Assembly (NCBI GenBank): GCA_048013815.1 | Contig: CM106585.1 | Span: 8,494,001 to 8,558,000 of the forward strand | DNA from: Setoptus koraiensis | Taxonomy: Eukaryota; Animalia; Arthropoda | DNA: 64,000 bases | Reading direction: 5' to 3' | Part shown: piece by piece, positions 22,092-64,000 of the stretch | Layout of the letters: the number at the start of each line of letters is the position of its first letter | Numbering within the stretch: position 1 is the stretch's first letter | The notes under the pieces: generated by a model | The model's input: the letters and a program-made list of their open reading frames with translations, nothing else | The model's database searches: none | What the model was told of the DNA's origin: nothing | Made by a program: the position numbers and the translations under genes

Positions 22092-22164
22092 GTTTCCGTA
22101 GTGTAGTGGTTATCACGTGCGCTTCACACGCGCAAGGTCCCCGGTTCGAACCCGGGCGGAAACA
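22092..22164 (+). tRNA. tRNA-Val(CAC)
   Basis: GTTTCCGTAGTGTAGTGGTTATCACGTGCGCTTCACACGCGCAAGGTCCCCGGTTCGAACCCGGGCGGAAACA; cloverleaf with anticodon stem TGCGC/GCGCA around TT-CAC-AC; A and B boxes. Confidence 0.97.
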
Positions 22165-22675: not shown

Positions 22676-22747
22676 TGCGTTAGCCGGGAATCGAACCCGG
22701 GTCCCGTGCGTGGCAGGCACGGATCTTAACCACTGGACCACCAACGC
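22676..22747 (-). tRNA. tRNA-Gly(GCC)
   Basis: Reverse complement GCGTTGGTGGTCCAGTGGTTAAGATCCGTGCCTGCCACGCACGGGACCCGGGTTCGATTCCCGGCTAACGCA; anticodon stem CGTGC/GCACG around CT-GCC-AC; T6 terminator at 22667-22672. Confidence 0.95.
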
Positions 22748-22894: not shown

Positions 22895-23563
22895 ATGTAT
22901 CCAGAGATGCAAAACTTTCAATGGAATTCTCAATTAAGAGACCTCCTCAAAGAAACTAGGGATTTAAATAAAGAGCTTCATGCAAAAAAAGAGGAATGTG
23001 ATTCTGTTTTGCAATCTATCGCCTCAACTATCCAACCAAATCTGCAGCATGTGACCAAGCACAATGAATATCCCCCCAGATTTTATGAGTATATCATCGA
23101 GATCAGAAAGATTATAGATGATACAAGGGGCAAACTCATAAAAAGTTCAGTGTCTCATGAATGCTTCTTTGACAGCTCAAGCATTTGCGTACCCGATCTA
23201 ATATTTCCGGATAGCGGCATTAGTCAATGTATAGTACAACTGTGCGAGCTCATTTCATTAATTCTTATAGACATTGAAGAAAACGGAGATCAAACAGAGG
23301 AGATGAGGAAGCTCAACGCAGACAAAACAGTTGTCATGGTGTTGCAATATTACATTCTCGTCGGTCCTATCGTGTTCAAGGAGGCAACAGAAAATTTCCC
23401 TGACGATCAAGGAACCAGATACAGCAATGATTATATGTTCTTGAAACACTTCATAAAAAATCTACAGTCATCCAGTAGGAGTACCGAAATGAAAAGAGAA
23501 CTTGGCAACATACTAGCCGCTATGACTTTGCAAGAGCGTGAAAGGTTGGAATATGTAAATTAA
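22895..23563 (+). CDS. Uncharacterised helical protein, 222 aa
   Basis: ATG-initiated 669-bp ORF with a coiled-coil-like N-terminus (LRDLLKETRDLNKELHAKKEE); AATAAA near 23590; no family recognised. Confidence 0.55.
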   Translation: MYPEMQNFQWNSQLRDLLKETRDLNKELHAKKEECDSVLQSIASTIQPNLQHVTKHNEYPPRFYEYIIEIRKIIDDTRGKLIKSSVSHECFFDSSSICVPDLIFPDSGISQCIVQLCELISLILIDIEENGDQTEEMRKLNADKTVVMVLQYYILVGPIVFKEATENFPDDQGTRYSNDYMFLKHFIKNLQSSSRSTEMKRELGNILAAMTLQERERLEYVN

Positions 23564-23700
23564 ATTACAAGATGATTAAAATTTAATCAAATAAATCTGT
23601 TTGTCGTTAGTTTGGAGCATTTCTTAACATGATTCTTCAAGAGTTGTCCAACACAATGTTTCCGAGCGATCCACTTGTGGTTAAACTTTCTCTCGTCTGA

Positions 23701-26541
23701 CTAATTCAAGTATTTCTGACAATTCGGCGCGCGACAATTACATCGAATCTTCTCTTCTATGGGCAGATCTTCACGAGGAAATTTGTAGTCATAGGTGATT
23801 TCCTCCTCTTCCTCAATGGTTTTACTTGCATATATTACGATGGCGTTTCCTTGCCCATTATCGTGCCGAATAACCTTGGCTATACAGTTAGGATTGCAAC
23901 TGTGATTTATGAATCTGGCCTTGTTACCCTTGAGTGTAGCATCTATAACTTGGTCGTCAACTCTGAAGAAATATGAACTTCCGTCGTGTGTCTTCAAGCC
24001 AGCATAAACCTTCTCGCGGTGATCAGCTAAAGATGGTCGAATTTTTTCGCCCACATACTCTATCACAGCTGCACCATTCGCAATCTTCTCACATGCGAAC
24101 AATCCCCATTTGTGTATCTTACTAAGAGAGAACCTCAGGTTCTTTGAGCGAATTTGCAAACTACTGAACATAAATCTCATCATCGCTGACCCGAGTGTTT
24201 CAGCATGAGCCACGGCGAACCTGCGCTGTTCACCTCGAAGGTCACTCCTTGATGAGCTCTTTACTTGTGCCCTCGATTTTATGGGAGCCTTAGAGAGATC
24301 TTCATCAACCTTATCGCCCTTCCAAACTTTCGATCCATCTTTCTCCCTCGGGAATCCATCACATCTTGAGCATCCTTTCCACCATGTTGGCGAATCACTT
24401 TCGTCATCTTTTTTATCTTTACCTTTTTTCTTCTTATTGACTTGAGGCTTGACTACTGGCTTAAATGGCAGATGAGCTCTATTAACGTCTTCTGATCCCT
24501 TTGAAGATCCTTCCAACATGCCACTGTAAACAGGATTCTCGCACATCTTGTCGTAGGCTTCCATGAGGAACTTGAAAGCTTCTTCATCGATGCCAATAAT
24601 ATCATCGATGATTCTGCTCTGCTCTTCTTCACTTCTTACATCAAAAGAAAACTCTGGAATATCACGTAATTTGTCTAAATCACCGGAGTCGTGCTTGATT
24701 CGTTTGTATTGTCGTTTAGTGGGTGGAAAGTGCTCCTCAAGAACTTTCCTCTTATTATTCGTTTTCACAATAACATCTTCATCTTCCGAGTATTCCATCA
24801 TCTCATCTATGACGCCGTCTTCTTTCTTGATTGATACCGTATTCTCGGTAGAAACGGTAGAACCAAGAGTTGCCAAGATTTGAGCCACCTCGCCTTCTTC
24901 TTCAGATCTTAGTCGCGTCTCTCTTGGGGTGGGGCGAATTTCGGAAGGTGCTTCAGGAACAAAAGGCACAGCCGATATACGAGGACTTAAATTATCCAAT
25001 TTCTTCTGTGAGGTCGTTAAGCCAGACGATGAAGAACTATCGTAGGATGATTGATCAGAGGAATCATCTGAATCTGAGTCAGATTCCGACTCGGATGACG
25101 AGGAGTCTGATGATGAGGATGATAGCGAAGTCGTATCTCTGAAATTTGTTGCTGAGCCTGCTCTAGAAGTTTGCTTTGGTTGCTCGGATGACCATGCAGC
25201 TGACCTATTCACTCTCCTGATTATATTCTCATCTGTTGTGTTTCTTTTGCCAATTGAAACTGTGTTAGAAGTTCGCCTATTGATGAAAGCATGTGGTAGA
25301 CTGCGCCGGTCAGGCACTGTGTTTGTATAGTTTGATCCCAAAACGTTTTGAATCAATTTATGATTAACTGGTTTTATATCCTCACTTTTCTTTCTCTCTA
25401 AAGAAGTTTTTTCATACTTGGCTTTTTCTGCGTCAATAAGAGGATAACCAACTTGCTCAAGAATACATTTGTGAAAGTGTTTCAAGAGAGCCTCTCTACA
25501 GGTATTTTCAAATATCTTATACAGCTCATACAGTTCTTTCTGAATCTGGGATCTAGTTAGATCTTTTGGTAATTCCCTCTGAGCGACACTCTTTTCTTCG
25601 TGATTATCGAAGGCATTCTGTTTCCTGGGTGGCGTGTTTGGTCTTTTGCGGTGATTGTGGTGATTATCCTCTTTACCACTATAGTCACGATGATTGTTCC
25701 AATCATTATGACTATTGCGTTGATTACGTTGATTGTAAGCATCTTTTCTGATTTCATTGTTGAATGATGGAAGTACATTTTCGATAGGAGATGGTGTCCG
25801 ATTGTGATAAGTCAGTTTGTTGTATTCTGGAGGGAAGATTTGATTCTTTTCATTGTGGTTGGGCATTAAACATTGCGCTAGACCCGAATTGTTATGAAGA
25901 AGAAAATTAATTCTTTCATCTAATGAACGAAATTGTGGTTCTTTACAAGTGACACCATTAGTTGGTTGCATGATCGATGGGAATTGAAGATTCGGCAGAA
26001 CTGTTGGTGGTATCAACGCCTGATGAGCAGGTGTTGTTTGTTGATTTGTTGGTGGGTGGATTATATTCTCTCTGATGGCGTTGATTTTAGTAAATCTTGG
26101 GTCGAGAAAGACAGATAGTTTCTTACCCATAAAACTCTTTTCATGGAATTTGAGTACACACTCTTTGGCATCTATAACCTTCTCAAATTGTACTTTTGCT
26201 ATACCCAAATGTGTATTATCAATTGGATGATGCAAAACATCACAATGTGAAACCTTTCCGAATTTTGATAGTTCTTTCTTGAGGAAATTATTATCAATGT
26301 TATCATTGAGATTATTAATAGATACTTGCACATCTGGCGGAACTCCAACGTAATTATCGTCAATCATAAATTTAGGTTTCACCAGATCAATATCTTTGGA
26401 GAATTTTGTCCGAGAGGAGCCTCTATATTTGATACTAGTTTCACGGGGATCAATAGTACTATCATGTTCGGAAATATTCTCTAGGGGTATGACCCTTGCG
26501 AGAGGTTTAGATTGCTGCCGTTGTTGTGGTGTAACGCTCAT
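23701..26541 (-). CDS. Set1: Histone H3K4 methyltransferase Set1/SETD1, intronless, 946 aa
   Basis: N-terminal RRM; Ser/Asp-rich region; n-SET with WIN-like GCSRCDG and RxxxRR (RGEQRR); SET domain (IEYVGE, RFINHSCNPNC, EITYDYKF); post-SET CNCxxxxC; C-terminal YLN. Confidence 0.95.
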   Translation of the reverse strand: MSVTPQQRQQSKPLARVIPLENISEHDSTIDPRETSIKYRGSSRTKFSKDIDLVKPKFMIDDNYVGVPPDVQVSINNLNDNIDNNFLKKELSKFGKVSHCDVLHHPIDNTHLGIAKVQFEKVIDAKECVLKFHEKSFMGKKLSVFLDPRFTKINAIRENIIHPPTNQQTTPAHQALIPPTVLPNLQFPSIMQPTNGVTCKEPQFRSLDERINFLLHNNSGLAQCLMPNHNEKNQIFPPEYNKLTYHNRTPSPIENVLPSFNNEIRKDAYNQRNQRNSHNDWNNHRDYSGKEDNHHNHRKRPNTPPRKQNAFDNHEEKSVAQRELPKDLTRSQIQKELYELYKIFENTCREALLKHFHKCILEQVGYPLIDAEKAKYEKTSLERKKSEDIKPVNHKLIQNVLGSNYTNTVPDRRSLPHAFINRRTSNTVSIGKRNTTDENIIRRVNRSAAWSSEQPKQTSRAGSATNFRDTTSLSSSSSDSSSSESESDSDSDDSSDQSSYDSSSSSGLTTSQKKLDNLSPRISAVPFVPEAPSEIRPTPRETRLRSEEEGEVAQILATLGSTVSTENTVSIKKEDGVIDEMMEYSEDEDVIVKTNNKRKVLEEHFPPTKRQYKRIKHDSGDLDKLRDIPEFSFDVRSEEEQSRIIDDIIGIDEEAFKFLMEAYDKMCENPVYSGMLEGSSKGSEDVNRAHLPFKPVVKPQVNKKKKGKDKKDDESDSPTWWKGCSRCDGFPREKDGSKVWKGDKVDEDLSKAPIKSRAQVKSSSRSDLRGEQRRFAVAHAETLGSAMMRFMFSSLQIRSKNLRFSLSKIHKWGLFACEKIANGAAVIEYVGEKIRPSLADHREKVYAGLKTHDGSSYFFRVDDQVIDATLKGNKARFINHSCNPNCIAKVIRHDNGQGNAIVIYASKTIEEEEEITYDYKFPREDLPIEEKIRCNCRAPNCQKYLN

Positions 26542-29072
26542 GGTGAGTTGCTTTGTAATTGGATAATATTATAGCTAGAATATACAATTTATATAATATA
26601 ATAATGTGATACTAATATTATAGTAATATTAATATTAATAATAGTGTAGATGGTGAAAATATTGATTACGGCAATGACAACAATATAAATGGTCGTTGCA
26701 TTAAAAAATTTGTCTAGTATATAGAGAAATAGCACTATCAGTAGTGGCAGTGTAGTAGAAAATATATACAACACTCCAAATCATCTTGTACCACTCGGAT
26801 TTGAGCTGCGAGCAGGAGGCTCACAGCAACCATTCCAGGCCCAGGCAAGGTAGTCTTGTGCGCGTTGGGCACGCCGTAGTAGGGCACTCTCTGATACTGT
26901 GCCCTACAGGCGCCCTTTAGAGAGCCACCAATTGAGAGCCGCAGGTGCAATCATCATCTTGCCACGATGAACAATAATTGTAAATGTGACAGATATTAAT
27001 TAGTTTGTTAATTAATATCATCATTTTTGCCTTTAATGTCGGTCACATGTCGCGGCCGCGCACATTTGCGGGTACTACAGGGTATACCCGTAAGCGTGTG
27101 TCTCTACTACCTGTAGTGGTTGGTGTCTATGTTTAGTTGTTGCCCTGTGTTTATGTGCTTGTGCTTGCACATATGACAATCCAATAGTTTTGTTCCGTTC
27201 CATTCTAGTGCGCTTAATACAGCTCATAGTGGCCTGAAAGTGAAAATCTACGTTCAAACGCACGCACAAGCTAGTCGCAGTACAGGGTGTAAATCTACGA
27301 ATGAAACGCGCGGTGCAAAATCATATCGCTTCCACTGTGCCAAGCGAAAGTAAATTATTCACACACCGTGTAGGGTGTCTCTCTCTCTCTCTCTCTAATA
27401 TAGTGTGTCACACAAATCATAAGACCGCTGCCGCCGCTGAATACAACATGTTTGATTACAAGTGTTTGATTAGACAACGATTGAATGCGCACTTTGTCAC
27501 TGATCGCCAAATGTTTGCTGCTCCACACATTATCAGACGCTCTGTATCACTCTTTTATCCACATATCCACATACTATATCTACGGCTTCAAATGAATGAA
27601 TGCAAGGTGATTTGCAGGTCGTCTTAAATTATTAATTAGCGATTGGATAACCTGGCAAGATTGTTTGAATTTCTCATCTATGGGTGTGTGTGTGTGTGTC
27701 TGCGTGGTGTGCTCATGTGTGCCCATCGAAACACCTAGACAGCAGATAGTCAAGGCGCTTGTTTACTGAAAATAATCAAATTAAATAATTTATCCACCAT
27801 GATCTATATTTGTTAGCTTGCTAGCCAACAGTGGCAGCTAACTGTGTGTATGTCTGATTGTGTGTCTGTGTGTTCGTGTGTATGTGCGTCTCTCCTTAGA
27901 ATGTCCGTTGCGAAGCTTAGCTCGTTAGCGCCTAGCAACGGTTCTATTATGATAGCGACGAACCACCACTCTCAACTGACTGGGCGCCAGGTTGACCAAG
28001 TGGTCGTCATCATCATTTGTGTGAAGTGTTGAAGCCTAAATTCATAAGGCTACACAACGAGAACATGAGACAAGACAGCTCCCGGGGACCCAAATATAAC
28101 AAGAGAGGCGAATAAGGCGACGATAAGGACGACGATAACAACGGCGACGTGTTTGCATAGGATTTCCGTCGCCAGTGGGTAGCTCTTGTTGTTGCTAGTT
28201 GCCTATTTAGAGGGTGGCTCATATTGTTATTAATACATACGCGATGTACATTGCAAATATGTGATGATCTGAAGGTTTTCAACGTCTGCCAGTCACCCGT
28301 TTGTCTGTCTACCCGTCTATCTGCCGTATGCTTGTCTATTTTTACTACATTTTATTATTGTTCATGTATTTTCTACAAGTATACGAATTTAAACCTAAAT
28401 ATTATGTTATTATTATTATACATGATTGTTTTCTTTCTATTAATTCCAGACAATATAGTAGACCTCATATATCGTATATGCCTCTAATATCTAGGATATT
28501 TGGAGGTGTGTCTATATTTTGTTTTATTTATGTAATAGATTTTATGCGGTTGCTTCTGTTTAGCGTGCGTTGCAGGGCGTAAGTCGTCATTTATTCTGTT
28601 TAGGCCACTGGGTGCAATCGCACTCTAATATTCTCTGTGCCAGTTCTTTGTAAACACAAAGCTGAGAATCGTGTTCGTGCGTATTTCGATAAGTCTTGTG
28701 CGAATCGTCTGCGTGTGTTGTGCCAAAAGCATAAACATCCATACAGGCTCAAAGTGATGATTCAGTCTCATGTGCTGTATCTTGTGCTTATCTGTACAGG
28801 TCACGCACACGTGAGTTTGTGTGCGTGCGCACAGACGATCGTAAAGTAACAAGATTTCATAGAGCACCGAATTCATGTTAACGCGCCCATTCTATCAACA
28901 GCTATGCGCAATTTAGCTATCGAAGCGCAACTTTTAAATAAATTCAAAATCTCTGTCATCACGGATACTTCTACCACATTCCCGTTTTCTGTCTTCCGCC
29001 TGTCAAGAGGTTTCCTTTGCTCCCCATCTATCGCCACCACCCGTGGACCCTCGTGCCATTTAGAGCAAGCAC

Positions 29073-31286
29073 ATGGATAAATTCAGGAATGGTGTCATTG
29101 TTGAAACAAGTAATAAGAGGAAAGTTCTTGAAGAGATCTCTCCCACTAAACGACAATTCAAACGATTCAAGCATGACACGGATGATTCAGGCAAATTACC
29201 GGAGTTTTCTTTTGATGTAAGAAGTGAAGAAGAGCAGAGCAGAATCATCGATGATATTATTGGCATCGATGAAGAAGCTTTCAAGTTCCTCATGGAAGCC
29301 TACGACAAGATGAGCAAAAATCTTAGGTACAGTGTCTTCTTAAATGGGTCATATAGAGGATCAGATGACGTTAATAGGGCTCATTTGCCATTCCAGTCAA
29401 TAGCTGAGCCTCAAGTCAATGAGAAGAAAAAGAGCAAGGATAACAAAGATGACGAAAGTGGTTCGCCAGCATGGTGGAAAGGATGCTCAAGATGTGATGG
29501 ATTCCCCAGAGAGAAAGATGGATCGATAGTTTGGAAGGGCGATAAGGTTGATGAAGATCTCTCTAAGGCTCCCATAAAATCGAGGGCACAAGTAAAGAGC
29601 TCATCAAAGAGTGATCTTAGAGGCGAACATCGCAGGTTTGCCGTGGCTCATGCCGAAACACTCGGGTCAGCAATGATGAGATTTATGTTCAGTAGTTTGC
29701 AAATTCGCTCAAAGAATCTGAGGTTCTCTCATAGTAAGATACACAAATGGGGATTGTTCGCATGTGAGAAGATTGCGAATGGTGCAGCTGTGATAGAGTA
29801 TGTGGGCGAAAAAATTCGACCATCTTTAGCTGATCACCGCGAGAAGGTTTATGCTGGCTTGAAGACACACGACGGAAGTTCATATTTCTTCAGAGTTGAC
29901 GACCAAGTTATAGATGCTACACTCAAGGGTAACAAGGCCAGATTTATCAATCACAGTTGCAATCCTAACTGTATAGCCAAGGTTATTCGGCACGATAATG
30001 GGCAAGGAAATGCCATCGTAATATATGCAAGTAAAACCATTGAGGAAGGGGAGGAAATCACCTATGACTACAAATTTCCTCGTGAAGATCTGCCCATAGA
30101 AGAGAAGATTCGATGTAATTGTCGCGCGCCGAATTGTCAGAAATCGAAAGTACGGAAGGACGATAAGGTTGATGAAGAGGATAAAGAGAATCTCTCTGAG
30201 GCTAAGAGGAAAGTTCTTGGGGAGCACCTTCCCCCCACTAAACGACAATGCAAACGAATCAAGCAAAACTCGGGCGATTCAGACAAATCTTGTGATATTC
30301 CGGAGTTTTCTTTTGATGTAAGAAGTGAAGAAGAGCAGAGCAGAATCATCGATGATATTATTGGCATCGATGAGGAAGCTTTCAAGTTCCTCATGGAAGC
30401 CTACGACAAGATGCGCATAAATCGTAGGTACAAGCTCATCTTAGAGAGGTCATATAAAGGATCAGAAGACGTTAATAGGGCTCATCTGCCATTTAAGCCA
30501 GTAGTCAAGCCTCAAGTCAATAAGAAGAAAAAAGTTAAAGATAAAAAAGATGACGAAAGTGATTCGCCAACATGGTGGAAAGGATGCTCAAGATGTGATG
30601 GATTCTCGAGAGAAAAAGATAAATCGAAAGTTTGGAAGGGCTATAAGGTTGATGAAGAGCATGAAGAAGACGAACAGGATGAAGAGGATGAAGAGGATCT
30701 CTCTGAGGCTCAGAATAAATCAAGTACTCAAAAGAAAATTTCATGGAGATGTCATCTCAGAGGCGAACCGCGAAGGTTCGAGGAAACTCTAGGCAGTGCA
30801 ATAATGAAATCCATGTCTGGCAGTCTAAAGAGTCGCTCAAAATTTTTAGAATTTTCTCAGAGTAAAATACACAAATGGGGATTGTATGCTTGTGAGACGA
30901 TCCACATTGGTGCACCTGTGATAGAGTATGTGGGCGAAAAAATCAGACTTAGTTTAGCTGACCACCGAGAGAAGGTTTATGCTGAATCCAAGACACATGA
31001 CGGAAGTTCATATTTCTTCAGAGTGGACGACCAAGTTATCGATGCTACACTCAAGGGTAACAAGGCCAGATTTATCAATCACAGTTGCAATCCTAACTGT
31101 ATAGCCAAGGTTATTCGGCACGATAATGCCCAAGGAAATGCTCTTTTATTATTATATGCATGCAGAATCATTGAAAAAGGTGAGGAGATCACTTATGACT
31201 ACAAATTTCCTCGTGAACATGTGCCTAGGTCCGAGAAGATTCGATGTAACTGTCGCGCTGACAATTGTAAGAAATATTTGAATTAG
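29073..31286 (+). CDS. Set1-derived protein with two tandem n-SET/SET/post-SET modules and no RRM, 737 aa
   Basis: Intact ATG-initiated ORF (in-frame TAG at 29061). Unit 1 is about 29094-30142 and unit 2 about 30203-31286. Each is homologous to the Set1 C-terminal third and has RFINHSCNPNC, EITYDY and post-SET cysteines. Confidence 0.88.
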   Translation: MDKFRNGVIVETSNKRKVLEEISPTKRQFKRFKHDTDDSGKLPEFSFDVRSEEEQSRIIDDIIGIDEEAFKFLMEAYDKMSKNLRYSVFLNGSYRGSDDVNRAHLPFQSIAEPQVNEKKKSKDNKDDESGSPAWWKGCSRCDGFPREKDGSIVWKGDKVDEDLSKAPIKSRAQVKSSSKSDLRGEHRRFAVAHAETLGSAMMRFMFSSLQIRSKNLRFSHSKIHKWGLFACEKIANGAAVIEYVGEKIRPSLADHREKVYAGLKTHDGSSYFFRVDDQVIDATLKGNKARFINHSCNPNCIAKVIRHDNGQGNAIVIYASKTIEEGEEITYDYKFPREDLPIEEKIRCNCRAPNCQKSKVRKDDKVDEEDKENLSEAKRKVLGEHLPPTKRQCKRIKQNSGDSDKSCDIPEFSFDVRSEEEQSRIIDDIIGIDEEAFKFLMEAYDKMRINRRYKLILERSYKGSEDVNRAHLPFKPVVKPQVNKKKKVKDKKDDESDSPTWWKGCSRCDGFSREKDKSKVWKGYKVDEEHEEDEQDEEDEEDLSEAQNKSSTQKKISWRCHLRGEPRRFEETLGSAIMKSMSGSLKSRSKFLEFSQSKIHKWGLYACETIHIGAPVIEYVGEKIRLSLADHREKVYAESKTHDGSSYFFRVDDQVIDATLKGNKARFINHSCNPNCIAKVIRHDNAQGNALLLLYACRIIEKGEEITYDYKFPREHVPRSEKIRCNCRADNCKKYLN

Positions 31287-32711
31287 TTAAACGACTTAAA
31301 GTGAGAGAAACAATGTGTCGAACTACTTTGTGTGAAGAAATGCTTCAAACTACACTTTATTTTAATAAATTTTAATTAGCTGATAATGCTGTGATAGAAT
31401 AGTGATAATGCTAGTTCGTCGCGAGATGCAAGATCTAGCGTGAAAAGAAAACATTATGGAAATCATTAAATCGATTCAGCTCACTTAATTGATTGATCAA
31501 TTCGCGCTTCGATTTAGTAAACAATTCCCGATAACGTTCCTTGTTGAAAGACATTGAGTAATGTTGAGATGCATTGCATTATTGTTCGGCTAACAATCAA
31601 ATTTGCTCTATCGTGGATAATTCAAATATTTAAATAATAACTCTCTCATTGATCTAAATATCTGCAAATATTATTGGCCATGATTCACACAAGCTTGACC
31701 GATTGCGAACGAATCAATATTGATATTGTTGTATTTATATGTTGTATCATAGAATATTGCTTATTCTATACACGTATGCGTATGGTGTAATAGTGTAGAT
31801 AATGGTGTGTCGAGAAATGAAGAAAAGTTGGTCAGCGTCTCAAATGAGGTCCGCGTTTTCTTCGCGAATTACAAATTTAAACTTGTTGTTGTTGATGTTT
31901 GGTTTTGTTGAATAATCAAATTAATTACTATTTCACTAATCAAATTTATCTTTGCCCACTCGACTCTGATCACTCCGAATGGAAGCATTCGCAACAACAT
32001 CAAAAACAACAATTTGCCACTAAATTGTAGATTGTTGGCTTGATCCTCGATACGAGTCGTCTGACCAACGATTTGGATACTTGATAGTTATTGCACGCTA
32101 TCGGCCTTATATTTTACCTAGTGTATAAAAAATGCAAGTGTTAGTCTTTGTTCTTCGTTGCGTTAATTTCCGTTATTCTCAACAGGCAAATGGCTAGTGT
32201 TTTGAAGGGTGCCACGAATGTAGATTGTTTCACCAGTCTGACCATTCTGACCAATCTGATTGGTTGATTGATCGATTGAGAAAAATACCAGTGGCGCAGC
32301 GATAGTACATGTGTAGAGGCAATTGTATTTTCACGAATATATCTAATGGTGTCGCCAGTAATGAGGTGTGCGGGTATATCAAACAATAGACCTCGGATGC
32401 TAGTGCGATTGTTTGTTGGCCGACATAAACTTGGCGGTGGTGGTATGATTCGATAACAGTTTTAGACAGATAATACGTGTGTCTTAAATAAATGAAAAAT
32501 AAAAACTGGCCTAAACTACTAGCAAGATGACTGTAAATTGCTGTAATCAACTGAATTACATAGATAAAAGTGAGAAAAGTAGTCCTATATGCACATATAT
32601 TGTTGTCACTTTGATGTAGGTGTCACTACTGATCAATTGTCATTGCTTCACTAACTCATTGATCGGCTGTCTATTGGTGATAAATCAATTGTCAATTGTT
32701 GATTGATTTGT

Positions 32712-47437
<14,726 letters not shown>

Positions 47438-61700: not shown

Positions 61701-63840
61701 CAATACAATTTATATGTTATATATAAAACAAAATATATGTTTTGCGGTGATAACTGCAGTGTCTTGGCGTTGTATTTTCCAACTTTTTTGTAGGCCGCTC
61801 TCGCTCCTCCCACTGTGATTTTGCGACCAGTAATGGGAGGCAAGTTTGCCTCCCATGGGCTCGGGCGACACGGCACGAGAGAGGCTCAATTGTTAAATCA
61901 AGTGCGCACAATTGAGATGGAGCCGTCTCTTGCTATTAGCGGCAGTCGCTTGTAAATAGGCTTGCCGACCATCTGTCAGACGTTGCGAGCGACGACGGAC
62001 GACAAGAGGGCGCCCCAAGCCGGCCATATAACACACACACACACACACACATATATACATAACAAATAGAGCAAGTGACACACAGATAAAAAACTAAACT
62101 GCCCGTCCGACGAGCCCATTGAAATAAAGTGATATCCGCATGCCGCACGTATATGCAGCACGCCAGACAACAGCGACTCGTTATGTAATCGGTCGTTGTC
62201 GGGCGGCGTCTTGCAGGGTTCACGTTGCCACTGGCTGGCACCATTTGGGGTCCGCCAGCGCGCTCGTCAGCGTCGCGCCGGGAGCCCCAAACGGCGCGAC
62301 GCGAAACAGCGGCAAGCACTGGGCAAACGGCGAGCGCTTGGCAAACAGCGATAGACGGCAAAGGAAGGGCCAGACGCTGGTTATATCTATCATCTGGCTA
62401 GCAGATATTAGCGAGCTAGGGCAAATGTCGCGCGTTGAGATGTTTCAACTGGGGCGCCACTAAACTGGCCGCTGCAAGCGCTGAAAGCCGGCCGCTGCAA
62501 GCTGGCCGCTGCAAGCTGGCGGGGGCGCCATTGAGGCCCCGCTGACAAATCGAAAGTGAGCTCACTTTCGAGCCCGCCGCCAGTGGGGCCGGCCCGTCGG
62601 GCGGCCCACGACAAGCGGACGAAAATGAATTGTGATTTGGTGCTGGCCGGCTCAAGACACTGGCCAGCGCGCCGACCGCCAAGTGGCGGCGGCCCGGGCC
62701 AGCCAGCAGCGGGCCGGGCGAGACAAGTGGCGGCCCGAGCAGCGGACGGATATTTGCAGAAATTGCCAGTTCCGCTTGGGTGCCGTTTGGCGCCCCCGTT
62801 GTGGCCGGCGGCGCGCCAGCAAGCAGCGCCGGCTAGCTGCGGCCAGTGTCGCCAATGTCGCTAGGTCCTTTTTAGCGGCGTGGCTGTGATTACTGGTTAC
62901 TGTTGTTGCCAATTGTGTGTCGCTGGCACGACGACGGCCACGACGACCACCGTGACACGGCATAAACTGGCGCACCACACATAAACGCAGCCATGACGTA
63001 ATTGCATTCATGGTGTCATCCATACGCCACTGTGTGACGCAATATATGGATCATATCAAGACGACAGCGCACAATTGCCATGACCATTGTGCCACCACAC
63101 AAGCTGTGATATATGCCGCGATATATGCCGCGATATACGCCGTGATGTACGCCGTGATGTACGCCGTGATGTATGCTGGACAGTGGGGCCAGTGGGGCCG
63201 GCGGACGCATATATCACGATGCTGCCGCCAGCATGATGATGTGATGATATGTGTGAGCGGCAATTTACTCTCATTACAGCCGCTCGCTGGCCGCCGAGTG
63301 ACCCGCGCGGCCCGCTCCGGCCGCACCGCTGGCTCGCTGGGGCCCCGGCACGCAGCCGCACACAGCCCGTGCGAGGCGATAAATAGCTTGAAAACTAAAT
63401 TGAAATAGAACAGAATGGAACAACAAAATAAAATAAATCACCGCGCCGGCCGATTTATCCGACCACATTTATCTCTTTCAGTGACTCGGCCATGGGCTTA
63501 CGCTTCACCTCTCATGTCTAAATCGCTAAATCTCATTCAATTGGCCCTCTCTCCCTCTCTCTCTCTGCCCCCAACGCAACGCCATTGCAACTGACCAAAA
63601 CTGACCAAAACTCACCAATGAATTATGTCACAACGCACACGCCCGACTGTCGGATATCGCGTGCAAATCTCGCTCGTGCGCCGCTCAATCGCTCACCAGC
63701 TACTGGTCACTCCTATTGGCCTTGCTGGCCCTGCTTCGTGAGCCCCTTATTTCGTCCTTGGCCGGCCCGCCGACGTCGGTGCGGTCGCCGGCGTCGTTGT
63801 GGTCGCCGGCGTCGTTGTGGTCCTGGCTCGCCAACAGCGA

Positions 63841-63905
63841 CACAACAACAACAGCAGCAGCACAACAACAACAGCAACAACAACAGCAACAACAACAGCA
63901 ACATC
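63841..63905. repeat. (CAA/CAG)n trinucleotide repeat
   Basis: About 20 CAA/CAG triplets in GC-rich non-coding DNA. Confidence 0.85.
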
Positions 63906-64000
63906 AGCACCCAAATGGTCAGCGCTGCTGCTTTGTTGCCTACGCCCTACAGCTGACCAGCAGCTCTACCGGCCCCACCGGCCTCGTGGGCCCCATTGGG

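Follow-up and report, generated by a model that had tools for sequence, protein, structure and literature searches.

Set1 is a histone H3K4 methyltransferase. Binding to WDR5 is ascribed to a WIN motif with the consensus small residue-Ala-Arg-Ala/Ser/Thr. Gene conversion can cause young partial duplicates of a gene to evolve in concert with the parent copy. The minimal fragment that assembles the COMPASS catalytic core is yeast Set1(762-1080), comprising N-SET, SET and post-SET, which is the construct seen in 6VEN (6VEN, 6BX3; PMC7039682). In PMC7195483 Set1 is described as linked to Swd2/Wdr82 and the Pol II CTD through its N-terminal region. Chains with more than one SET annotation have been described for Chlamydomonas SUVH class IV-C (PMC5725981) and for cases of ATXR2, ASHR3 and ATXR3 (PMC12628639). 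These algal and plant proteins belong to other SET classes or kingdoms, are annotations from domain surveys, and none of them is a duplicated Set1 N-SET/SET/post-SET module. The closest described relatives of the locus presented here are the mite Set1/SETD1 proteins, namely its own 946-aa neighbour, Fragariocoptes setiger P0001 and Logan P0002-P0010. The two modules of the locus are homologous to these proteins over the whole C-terminal ~355 residues and have the same lineage-specific WIN-like WW-x-GCSRC, RxxxRR, SET and post-SET motifs, whereas the RRM and the central region are missing and two modules are present instead of one.

Setoptus koraiensis is a tiny plant-feeding mite with a genome of the eriophyoid type. 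The following features were annotated in the window, that is, the whole 64,000-nt stretch of its DNA that was analyzed:

23565..23700, minus strand: Set1 3' UTR, in which ATTAAA at 23587-23582 is the probable poly(A) signal; source of the copy that follows M2
23701..26541, minus strand: parent gene Set1, intronless, 946 aa (ORF list and Pfam: RRM_1 aa 74-142, SET aa 812-920, post-SET)
26542..29072, no strand: 2.5-kb spacer between the divergent start codons, with microsatellites and length polymorphisms between runs
29073..31286, plus strand: two-module ORF, 737 aa, with two Set1 C-terminal modules
29093..30144, plus strand: module M1, Set1 aa 590-943, ending 3 codons before the Set1 stop
30141..30212, plus strand: joint, ~65 nt copied from mid-M2 and placed between the M1 end and the M2 start
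30203..31286, plus strand: module M2, the older copy, Set1 aa 597-946 plus stop
31287..31388, plus strand: copied Set1 3' UTR behind M2, with AATAAA at 31364-31369

The preliminary description of this DNA had reported an intact 737-aa ORF 2.5 kb from Set1 and head-to-head with it, consisting of two copies of the Set1 C-terminal third, and all of this was borne out: the two genes are divergent with 2531 nt between their start codons, residues 8-357 of the ORF align with Set1 590-943 at 89% amino acid and 92.1% nucleotide identity, and residues 378-737 align with Set1 597-946 at 77% and 80.1%, respectively (blastp/blastn). M1 and M2 are 79.3% identical at the nucleotide level. Each module is a copy of the last ~355 Set1 residues and both lie in one frame. 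The ATG at 29073 is located in non-Set1 sequence, 20 nt upstream of the start of homology, and is the first possible start because an in-frame TAG occupies 29061-29063. Behind M2, Set1 homology stops a few bases past the AATAAA. The closest relatives of the parent protein are the Set1 proteins of eriophyoid-type mites, such as F. setiger. No further Set1 pieces were found in the 64-kb window by tblastn, the spacer is free of Pfam and Rfam features, and scanning of spacer and flanks with both collections revealed nothing beyond two tRNAs and the neighbouring genes.

The motifs listed in the preliminary description (GCSRCDG, RxxxRR, YVGE, RFINHSCNPNC, EITYDY and the post-SET cysteines) were each found twice. 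GCSRCDG is present at aa 137-143 and 504-510. The RxxxRR motif reads RGEHRR in M1 (aa 183-188) and RGEPRR in M2 (aa 563-568), with all three arginines kept in each and with His and Pro, respectively, in place of the glutamine that is invariant in mite Set1. YVGE, GSSYFFR, RFINHSCNPNC and EITYDY occur twice each, and the SAM-binding and catalytic SET motifs (H-x-W-G-L, YxG, GSSY, NHSC, E-x-T-Y-D-Y) are present in both modules. The post-SET cysteines (C-x-C-x4-C and the Cys of NHSC) are found in CNCRAPNC of M1 (aa 348-355) and CNCRADNC of M2 (aa 725-732), the M1 post-SET being without only its last three residues, YLN. In the WIN-like motif of both modules the arginine of GCSRCDG is kept and is preceded by Ser, not Ala, a variant common to the parent Set1 and all ten of ten mite orthologues. 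Pfam recognizes two SET stretches in the ORF and finds an RRM only in the parent, as had been stated before; since homology begins at Set1 aa 590 and there is no RRM, the ORF is a derived paralogue and not a canonical Set1. N-SET scores below the Pfam threshold in both the ORF and the parent; single phmmer stretches cover residues ~8-366 of the Set1 module in canonical SETD1 proteins that bear a Pfam N-SET.

A comparison of M2 with yeast Set1 in the COMPASS-nucleosome structure 6VEN gave E=2e-40, the RxxxRR helix included, and the yeast Set1 and human KMT2A SET structures were matched with E values of 1e-40 to 1e-33. Several of the M2 changes are residues that yeast Set1 has too. With E values of 1e-40 to solved Set1, a Set1-type fold is already certain from the sequence. 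Each module appears to span the same functional region as the yeast minimal fragment, which is a laboratory truncation, whereas the mite truncation is a natural gene and is doubled. Judged by homology, the 737-aa gene is a lineage-specific new variant of the known Set1 enzyme family.

An assembly artefact, against which the preliminary description had cautioned, would mean that a collapsed or mis-joined repeat yields a false double ORF; short-read contigs of public runs do break at every stretch common to the copies, and the whole ORF is not covered by any single contig. Against this stands a 215-nt contig (30115-30329), which was recovered with zero differences in runs X1 and X2 from different studies and leads from sequence shared by Set1 and M1 through the linker into M2, having 30 nt on the M1 side, one below the 31-nt bridging threshold. 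In a third study, the joint is spanned by a 755-nt contig of run X7 (29571-30325) that is well anchored on either side. Contigs 27410-29228 and 31099-32800 tie both flanks to the ORF, and copy-specific contigs are covered about as deeply as the flanks, as for single-copy DNA. The M1/M2 arrangement is real DNA whose joint is crossed by short-read contigs of three studies, and an artefact is hardly conceivable. At 19 of the 20 listed differences, runs X1, X2, X7 and X10 carry the Set1 letter, the lone exception being the synonymous M2 site 30836. These differences therefore represent Set1 contigs assigned to the wrong copy or converted alleles, and the run variants were rejected as population data.

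Alignment of the three copies yielded 195 variable sites, 187 of them informative and 8 with all three copies different. The sites cluster in zones in which Set1 equals M1, Set1 equals M2 or M1 equals M2, and as few runs were obtained in none of 20000 permutations. This mosaic pattern shows that Set1, M1 and M2 have exchanged sequence by gene conversion. Changes private to M1 mark its 5' third, along with deletions of 3 and 9 nt that keep the frame, and from about 29600 onward the module is nearly identical to Set1, its catalytic half differing at 5 positions in about 590 nt (dS 0.035). A short M2 tract is likewise Set1-like. In a 590-nt zone of M2 divergence is about 19% and recent conversion is not seen. 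The locus thereby resembles known young duplicates evolving in concert, with which it shares inverted copies lying close together, mosaic tracts of identity and strain differences at copy-distinguishing sites, but differs in that the mid and SET tract of M2 has gone unconverted for long enough that a selective regime of its own is visible. The preliminary description had taken the open frame as an argument against a pseudogene. For M1 this does not hold, because recent conversion has made its catalytic half nearly identical to Set1 and the integrity of this half is uninformative.

For M2 the argument stands. The rate test was based on a block of 169 unconverted codons with L001 as outgroup. 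A dS of 0.89 between Set1 and M2 over this block indicates that unconverted M2 is old, and dN was 0.129 on the M2 branch versus 0.012 on the Set1 branch. Because synonymous sites are saturated (pS 0.75-0.89), L001 could not be used to root them; rooting was limited to dN, and dS was halved between the branches. On the assumption that synonymous divergence is shared about evenly by both branches, omega of M2 is about 0.29 (bootstrap 0.17-0.45; a value of 1 was reached in none of 1000 replicates), away from the dN/dS near 1 that had been named, together with disruption in other strains, as evidence to the contrary; omega is about 0.03 for Set1, and the M2 protein changes at about ten times the Set1 rate. 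Among columns that are invariant in ten mite Set1 orthologues M2 changed 13 of 115, compared to 27 of 80 variable columns, a threefold depletion (22 M2 residues differ from the outgroup at invariant columns, and 9 of these are common with Set1, hence the 13 counted). The replacements at mite-invariant positions include Q to P in RxxxRR, R to E before SET, and IVIY to LLLLY, which is one residue longer.

All indels of M2 are in frame (a 39-nt insertion, a 12-nt deletion and a 3-nt insertion), and across the 737-codon frame five of five internal indels (3, 9, 39, 12 and 3 nt) are multiples of three. Stops or frameshifts were not found in this frame, which is open throughout. The probability of encountering no stop is 0.04-0.008 after 80-120 random substitutions and about 0.0005 after neutral decay over a dS of about 0.4, roughly 200 substitutions per module. 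Because omega is below neutrality, invariant sites are avoided and indels are in frame, M2 has most likely been translated. These rates and patterns show that unconverted M2 has evolved for a long time under relaxed but real purifying selection, and an omega of 0.3, being an average, leaves room for a recent neutral phase. Continuity of the ORF alone is no sign of a selected double enzyme because an in-frame internal duplication gives it anyway.

The anatomy of the locus suggests how it might have arisen. The 3' third of the intronless Set1, including its 3' UTR and poly(A) signal, would have been duplicated in inverted orientation 2.5 kb upstream, and the copy would have gained a new ATG. A tandem in-frame duplication of the module may have followed, leaving ~65 nt of templated sequence at the joint. 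The templates of the joint are M2 30621-30667 and 30678-30719 (87-88% identity); it encodes a 20-aa linker (aa 358-377) and would be of the complex type produced by replication template switching. Since then, conversion has turned the catalytic half of M1, together with a short M2 tract, Set1-like, and the remainder of M2 has diverged for long under relaxed purifying selection, keeping the frame and the catalytic, SAM-binding and zinc-binding motifs. A processed retrocopy was rejected as the main model of origin: the 3' UTR was copied past the poly(A) signal, but no A-tract follows it, and the copy is inverted and only 2.5 kb from its parent. The absence of introns is uninformative here because the parent is intronless as well.

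Similar genes were sought in protein collections. Out of 1.84 billion cluster representatives, a double protein whose second module reached about 80 bits or more should have ranked within the 150 best-scoring. No protein with two Set1 modules occurs there, and the rule of a single terminal SET domain in Set1 enzymes met with no exception in this set. In 150 of 150 the best-matching stretch ends at the C-terminus or at most about 20 residues from it, and the eight matches with two stretches have one SET domain each. The 737-aa product is not on record in an exact-protein look-up. In a word-based search with the whole ORF no match covers more than 48% of it, and the same search with the mid and SET part of M2 gave no M2-type relative, the best fragment (71% identity) being an ordinary mite Set1 piece. 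The search for relatives in other species, which had been proposed earlier, was thus answered in part: a related mite has a broken copy of the Set1 C-terminus, and protein and cluster-representative searches found no intact orthologue of the double ORF. Among the public runs listed as containing the stretch there is no recorded RNA run; a run guessed to be RNA contained a single 150-nt M1-type piece at a depth of about 3.

The reading that we favour, and to which we give about an even chance, is that the locus is a real, lineage-specific Set1-derived gene that is or recently was translated into an RRM-less protein. It is favoured by the selective signature of M2, the doubled set of catalytic motifs and the Set1 poly(A) signal that was copied along with M2, whereas the replacements at mite-invariant positions and the lack of an intact orthologue in the collections searched count against it. 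The median intergenic distance in Aculops lycopersici is 538 bp and eriophyoid genomes are streamlined (PMC7738191), so that 2.2 kb of dead DNA would hardly be expected to persist for long. A non-functional partial duplicate, kept open by conversion repair from the essential parent and with M2 released from constraint only recently, is less probable but has to be taken seriously. Such a duplicate agrees with the mosaic ancestry, the low dS between Set1 and the SET half of M1, public runs that differ at the sites that tell M1 from Set1, the conserved-looking yet broken copy of the related mite, the missing RNA records and the prior chance of about one in three that a joint is in frame. It is difficult to reconcile with the unconverted M2 zone, in which the low omega, the depletion at invariant columns and three in-frame indels coincide with an absence of stops that neutral decay would rarely leave.

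Compared to these two, it is unlikely that the locus is functional with only one module of importance or with two single-SET products. An internal start or promoter might give an M2-only protein, for which in-frame Met codons downstream of the M2 start are available, or M1 might be a passenger kept Set1-like by conversion; selection is demonstrable only for M2, and the M1 catalytic half is without an independent signal. However, there is no ATG at the M2 start, the first Met lies about 70 residues into M2, both private deletions of M1 are in frame, and no stop separates M1 from M2. A role at the RNA level is more improbable still. The inverted arms 23712-24657 and 29199-30144 (946 nt each, 94% complementary) could be a source of hairpin RNA whose small RNAs regulate Set1, as at hairpin loci that arose from inverted duplication of their targets. 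This would need one transcript of more than 6.4 kb, antisense through all of Set1, as the sense mRNAs of the divergent genes are not complementary, and it leaves the protein-level constraint on M2, the in-frame indels and the open frame unexplained.

If the locus is the translated Set1 derivative that we favour, its RRM-less product may bind a core of the WDR5/RbBP5/Ash2/Dpy30 type through the WIN-like and N-SET/SET surfaces. It would then methylate H3K4 while bypassing the Pol II-coupled recruitment that Set1 owes to its N-terminus, or else it would sequester core subunits at the expense of Set1. A 737-aa chain with both SET modules active and each with its own WDR5/RbBP5/Ash2/Dpy30 core, a natural 'double COMPASS', is a doubtful extension of this idea; if true, it would methylate the two H3 tails of one nucleosome, or adjacent nucleosomes, with no need of Pol II-coupled recruitment. 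If expressed, the gene would be a natural experiment on the minimal catalytic fragment of Set1, present in two copies and without the RRM and the N-terminus that couples to Pol II, and could show how an untethered COMPASS core acts in an animal and whether two active sites per chain alter the placement of H3K4 marks. Whatever its function, it represents a clear small case of the birth of a chromatin-enzyme paralogue, its internal duplication and its concerted evolution in an animal genome that ranks among the most streamlined. It also warns that conversion from an essential parent can give a duplicate a conserved look. The Set1 C-terminal copy of the related mite looks well conserved at the protein level and yet has a frameshift and a TGA, has lost the WIN arginine and is devoid of a post-SET.

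The double ORF, which the preliminary description put forward as a double-catalytic Set1 derivative, is made of two C-terminal modules (M1 and M2) of the neighbouring H3K4 methyltransferase gene Set1.

23701-26541, minus strand: Set1, intronless, 946 aa; RRM and C-terminal SET domain recognised by Pfam
29073-31286, plus strand: double ORF, 737 aa, two successive copies of the last ~355 Set1 residues
29093-30144, plus strand: M1, matching Set1 residues 590-943 (92.1% nucleotide and 89% amino-acid identity)
30203-31286, plus strand: M2, matching Set1 residues 597-946 (80.1% nucleotide and 77% amino-acid identity)

The two modules are 79.3% identical to each other. Pfam recognises two SET domains and no RRM in the double ORF, and each motif listed in the preliminary description is indeed present twice. 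The start codons of Set1 and the double ORF face each other, 2531 nt apart, and the latter lies in non-Set1 sequence, 20 nt ahead of the homology and shortly after an in-frame TAG. M1 lacks the last three Set1 codons and the stop codon; it is joined to M2 by a ~65-nt copy of the M2 middle (87-88% identity) coding for a 20-residue linker, and every distance between matching points of the modules is a multiple of three. In M2 the homology does not stop with the coding sequence but takes in part of the Set1 3' UTR, ending just past the poly(A) signal (ATTAAA in Set1, AATAAA at 31364-31369 behind M2). Besides parent and double ORF, no further Set1 pieces were found within the window. From this anatomy we infer that part of Set1 was first duplicated in inverted orientation and that the copy then underwent an internal tandem duplication in frame, with a templated insertion where the modules meet; events of this type are produced by template switching during replication. 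An origin as a 5'-truncated retrocopy is less probable, given the missing A-tract and the inverted position of the copy beside its parent.

The assembly was checked against short-read contigs from four public sequencing runs (X1, X2, X7 and X10), in which breaks occur at stretches common to the copies. A 215-nt contig (30115-30329), found in X1 and X2 from different studies, runs with zero differences from sequence shared by Set1 and M1 through the linker into M2; its 30 letters on the M1 side are one below the 31-letter bridging rule. A 755-nt contig of X7 (29571-30325) spans the joint with ample sequence on each side. Both flanks are joined to the double ORF by contigs, and copy-specific contigs have single-copy depth. 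An assembly artefact, which the preliminary description named as one outcome that would refute it, is thus extremely improbable.

Alignment of Set1, M1 and M2 revealed 195 variable sites, 187 of them phylogenetically informative and 8 with all three copies different. The sites fall into zones in which M1 and M2 agree against Set1 (alignment nt 240-300), Set1 and M2 against M1 (nt 300-420, 18 M1-private sites) or Set1 and M1 against M2 (nt 540-1130, about 110 M2-private sites), a clustering matched in 0 of 20000 permutations. Set1 and M1 are separated by a dS of just 0.035 in the last zone, so the catalytic half of M1 has recently been overwritten by Set1, or Set1 by M1. X1, X2 and X7 differ from the window and among themselves at the few positions that still tell M1 and Set1 apart (29507-30049); of the 20 differences listed across the public runs, 19 carry the Set1 letter. 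This suggests ongoing homogenisation by strain-specific, possibly two-way conversion, though contigs may instead switch between the copies within shared stretches.

Selection on M2 could be estimated over a block of 169 codons without recent conversion, which begins at the N-SET end and takes in the SET domain, with L001, a 976-nt Logan contig from a related mite (run SRR18067424), as protein-level outgroup. Here dS between Set1 and M2 is 0.89, and dN amounts to 0.129 for the M2 branch versus 0.012 for that of Set1. With dS split evenly between the branches, omega is 0.03 for Set1 and 0.29 for M2 (bootstrap 0.17-0.45, no replicate at 1); an M2 value of 1 requires that at most 15% of the synonymous divergence lie on its branch. 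Per-module dN/dS, as proposed earlier, is therefore below 1 for M2 and uninformative for the catalytic half of M1, where conversion is too recent. Ten mite Set1 orthologues served to polarise amino-acid differences between Set1 and M2: of those that could be polarised, 31 arose in M2 and 2 in Set1; M2 has changed at 13 of 115 invariant versus 27 of 80 variable columns. All five internal indels are in frame (3 and 9 nt in M1; 39, 12 and 3 nt in M2), and under simulated random substitution the frame stays open in only 4% to 0.8% of cases for 80-120 changes, the scale actually seen. Aligned to the yeast Set1 of 6VEN, a COMPASS-nucleosome structure, M2 reaches E=2e-40 with the RxxxRR helix included, and several of its specific states recur in yeast Set1, such as the Tyr of W-G-L-Y-A and the strand length ahead of the catalytic Tyr motif. 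Speaking against constraint, M2 also replaces mite-invariant positions, among them a Pro within RxxxRR, a charge reversal directly ahead of SET, and LLLLY for IVIY. On balance, M2 most likely evolved as translated sequence under relaxed constraint, and that constraint may have been lost recently.

Among the listed matches of a single Set1 module to 1.84 billion cluster representatives, no two-module Set1 protein was found. The best-matching stretch always ends at or near the C-terminus, and the eight that align over two stretches contain a single SET domain apiece, so that the rule of one terminal SET domain in this family, invoked earlier, held there. Word-based searches with the whole double ORF and with M2 returned neither a double-module protein nor one of M2 type. 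A few algal and plant proteins of other classes are credited with two SET domains in domain surveys (PMC5725981; PMC12628639). L001, whose mite shares lineage-specific Set1 residues with the mite of the window, copies the C-terminal part of Set1 but has a frameshift near nt 60-68 and a TGA at 545-547 replacing a Gly codon; its WIN Arg has become Pro, RR has become RG and the post-SET is absent. Since synonymous sites of L001 have reached saturation relative to the window whereas its protein otherwise stays near that of Set1, it is a recently disabled copy; partial Set1 copies thus arise in this lineage and can die. The proportion of synonymous differences between the Set1 module and L001 over the 169 codons is 0.89, versus 0.75 expected at saturation, which suggests that codon usage has shifted directionally between the two mites.

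Belief and doubt are evenly balanced for the reading of the double ORF as a real, lineage-specific Set1 paralogue, now or recently translated. Each module corresponds to yeast Set1 762-1080, the 6VEN construct and minimal fragment forming the COMPASS catalytic core (PMC7039682). Missing is the N-terminal part through which yeast Set1 is coupled with Swd2 and the CTD of Pol II (PMC7195483). The predicted protein might methylate H3K4 as an untethered enzyme or compete for COMPASS core subunits. A functionless duplicate, its copies refreshed by gene conversion and M2 only recently freed from constraint, is possible but rather doubtful: recent overwriting accounts for the intact M1 motifs, which are thereby uninformative on selection for M1, and the related mite's copy is disabled, but the low omega of the unconverted M2 block and its fewer changes at invariant columns speak against it. 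The preliminary description's observation of two modules with their motifs twice stands, and its argument from the open frame against a pseudogene holds for M2 only. Its boldest claim, one chain carrying two active COMPASS modules, is unlikely, as it draws on frame continuity, which an in-frame internal duplication yields by itself. A single-module product is likewise unlikely, and a source of hairpin RNA is very improbable. As to expression, none of the runs listed as containing the stretch is on record as RNA. X10, guessed to be RNA, contains a 150-nt piece (29097-29246, 4 differences, no gaps) that must be M1-type because Set1 and M2 differ there by 14-16 sites plus indels; Set1-type pieces occur at similarly low depth and the flanks are empty. 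This is a hint of transcription, not evidence of it.

The parent has its best relatives among the Set1 proteins of mites of eriophyoid type, e.g. Fragariocoptes setiger (58%), an affinity in keeping with an intronless gene in a tiny genome (PMC7738191). Rfam recognises two tRNA genes, at 22092-22164 (plus strand, 65 bits) and 22676-22747 (minus strand, 57 bits), just past a small convergent gene at 22895-23563 whose ZW10_C-like match does not reach the Pfam threshold. In the spacer between Set1 and the double ORF, contigs of X1 and X2 omit 153-156 nt (27703-27860) and one X2 contig omits 696 nt (27704-28401); these skips resemble length polymorphisms in a stretch rich in microsatellites. Downstream of the double ORF, X2 and X7 carry 27 extra nt of TCTGACC-like heptamers at 32236 that the window lacks, marking a length-polymorphic minisatellite. 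Convergent with the double ORF lies a pyridoxal-dependent decarboxylase gene (34066-35731, minus strand; Pfam PF00282 in two separate ORFs), clearly intron-bearing unlike Set1. G+C climbs from about 0.40 to 0.52-0.58 at 36000-46000 and 62000-64000, and a long (CA)n microsatellite is found near 36.6 kb.
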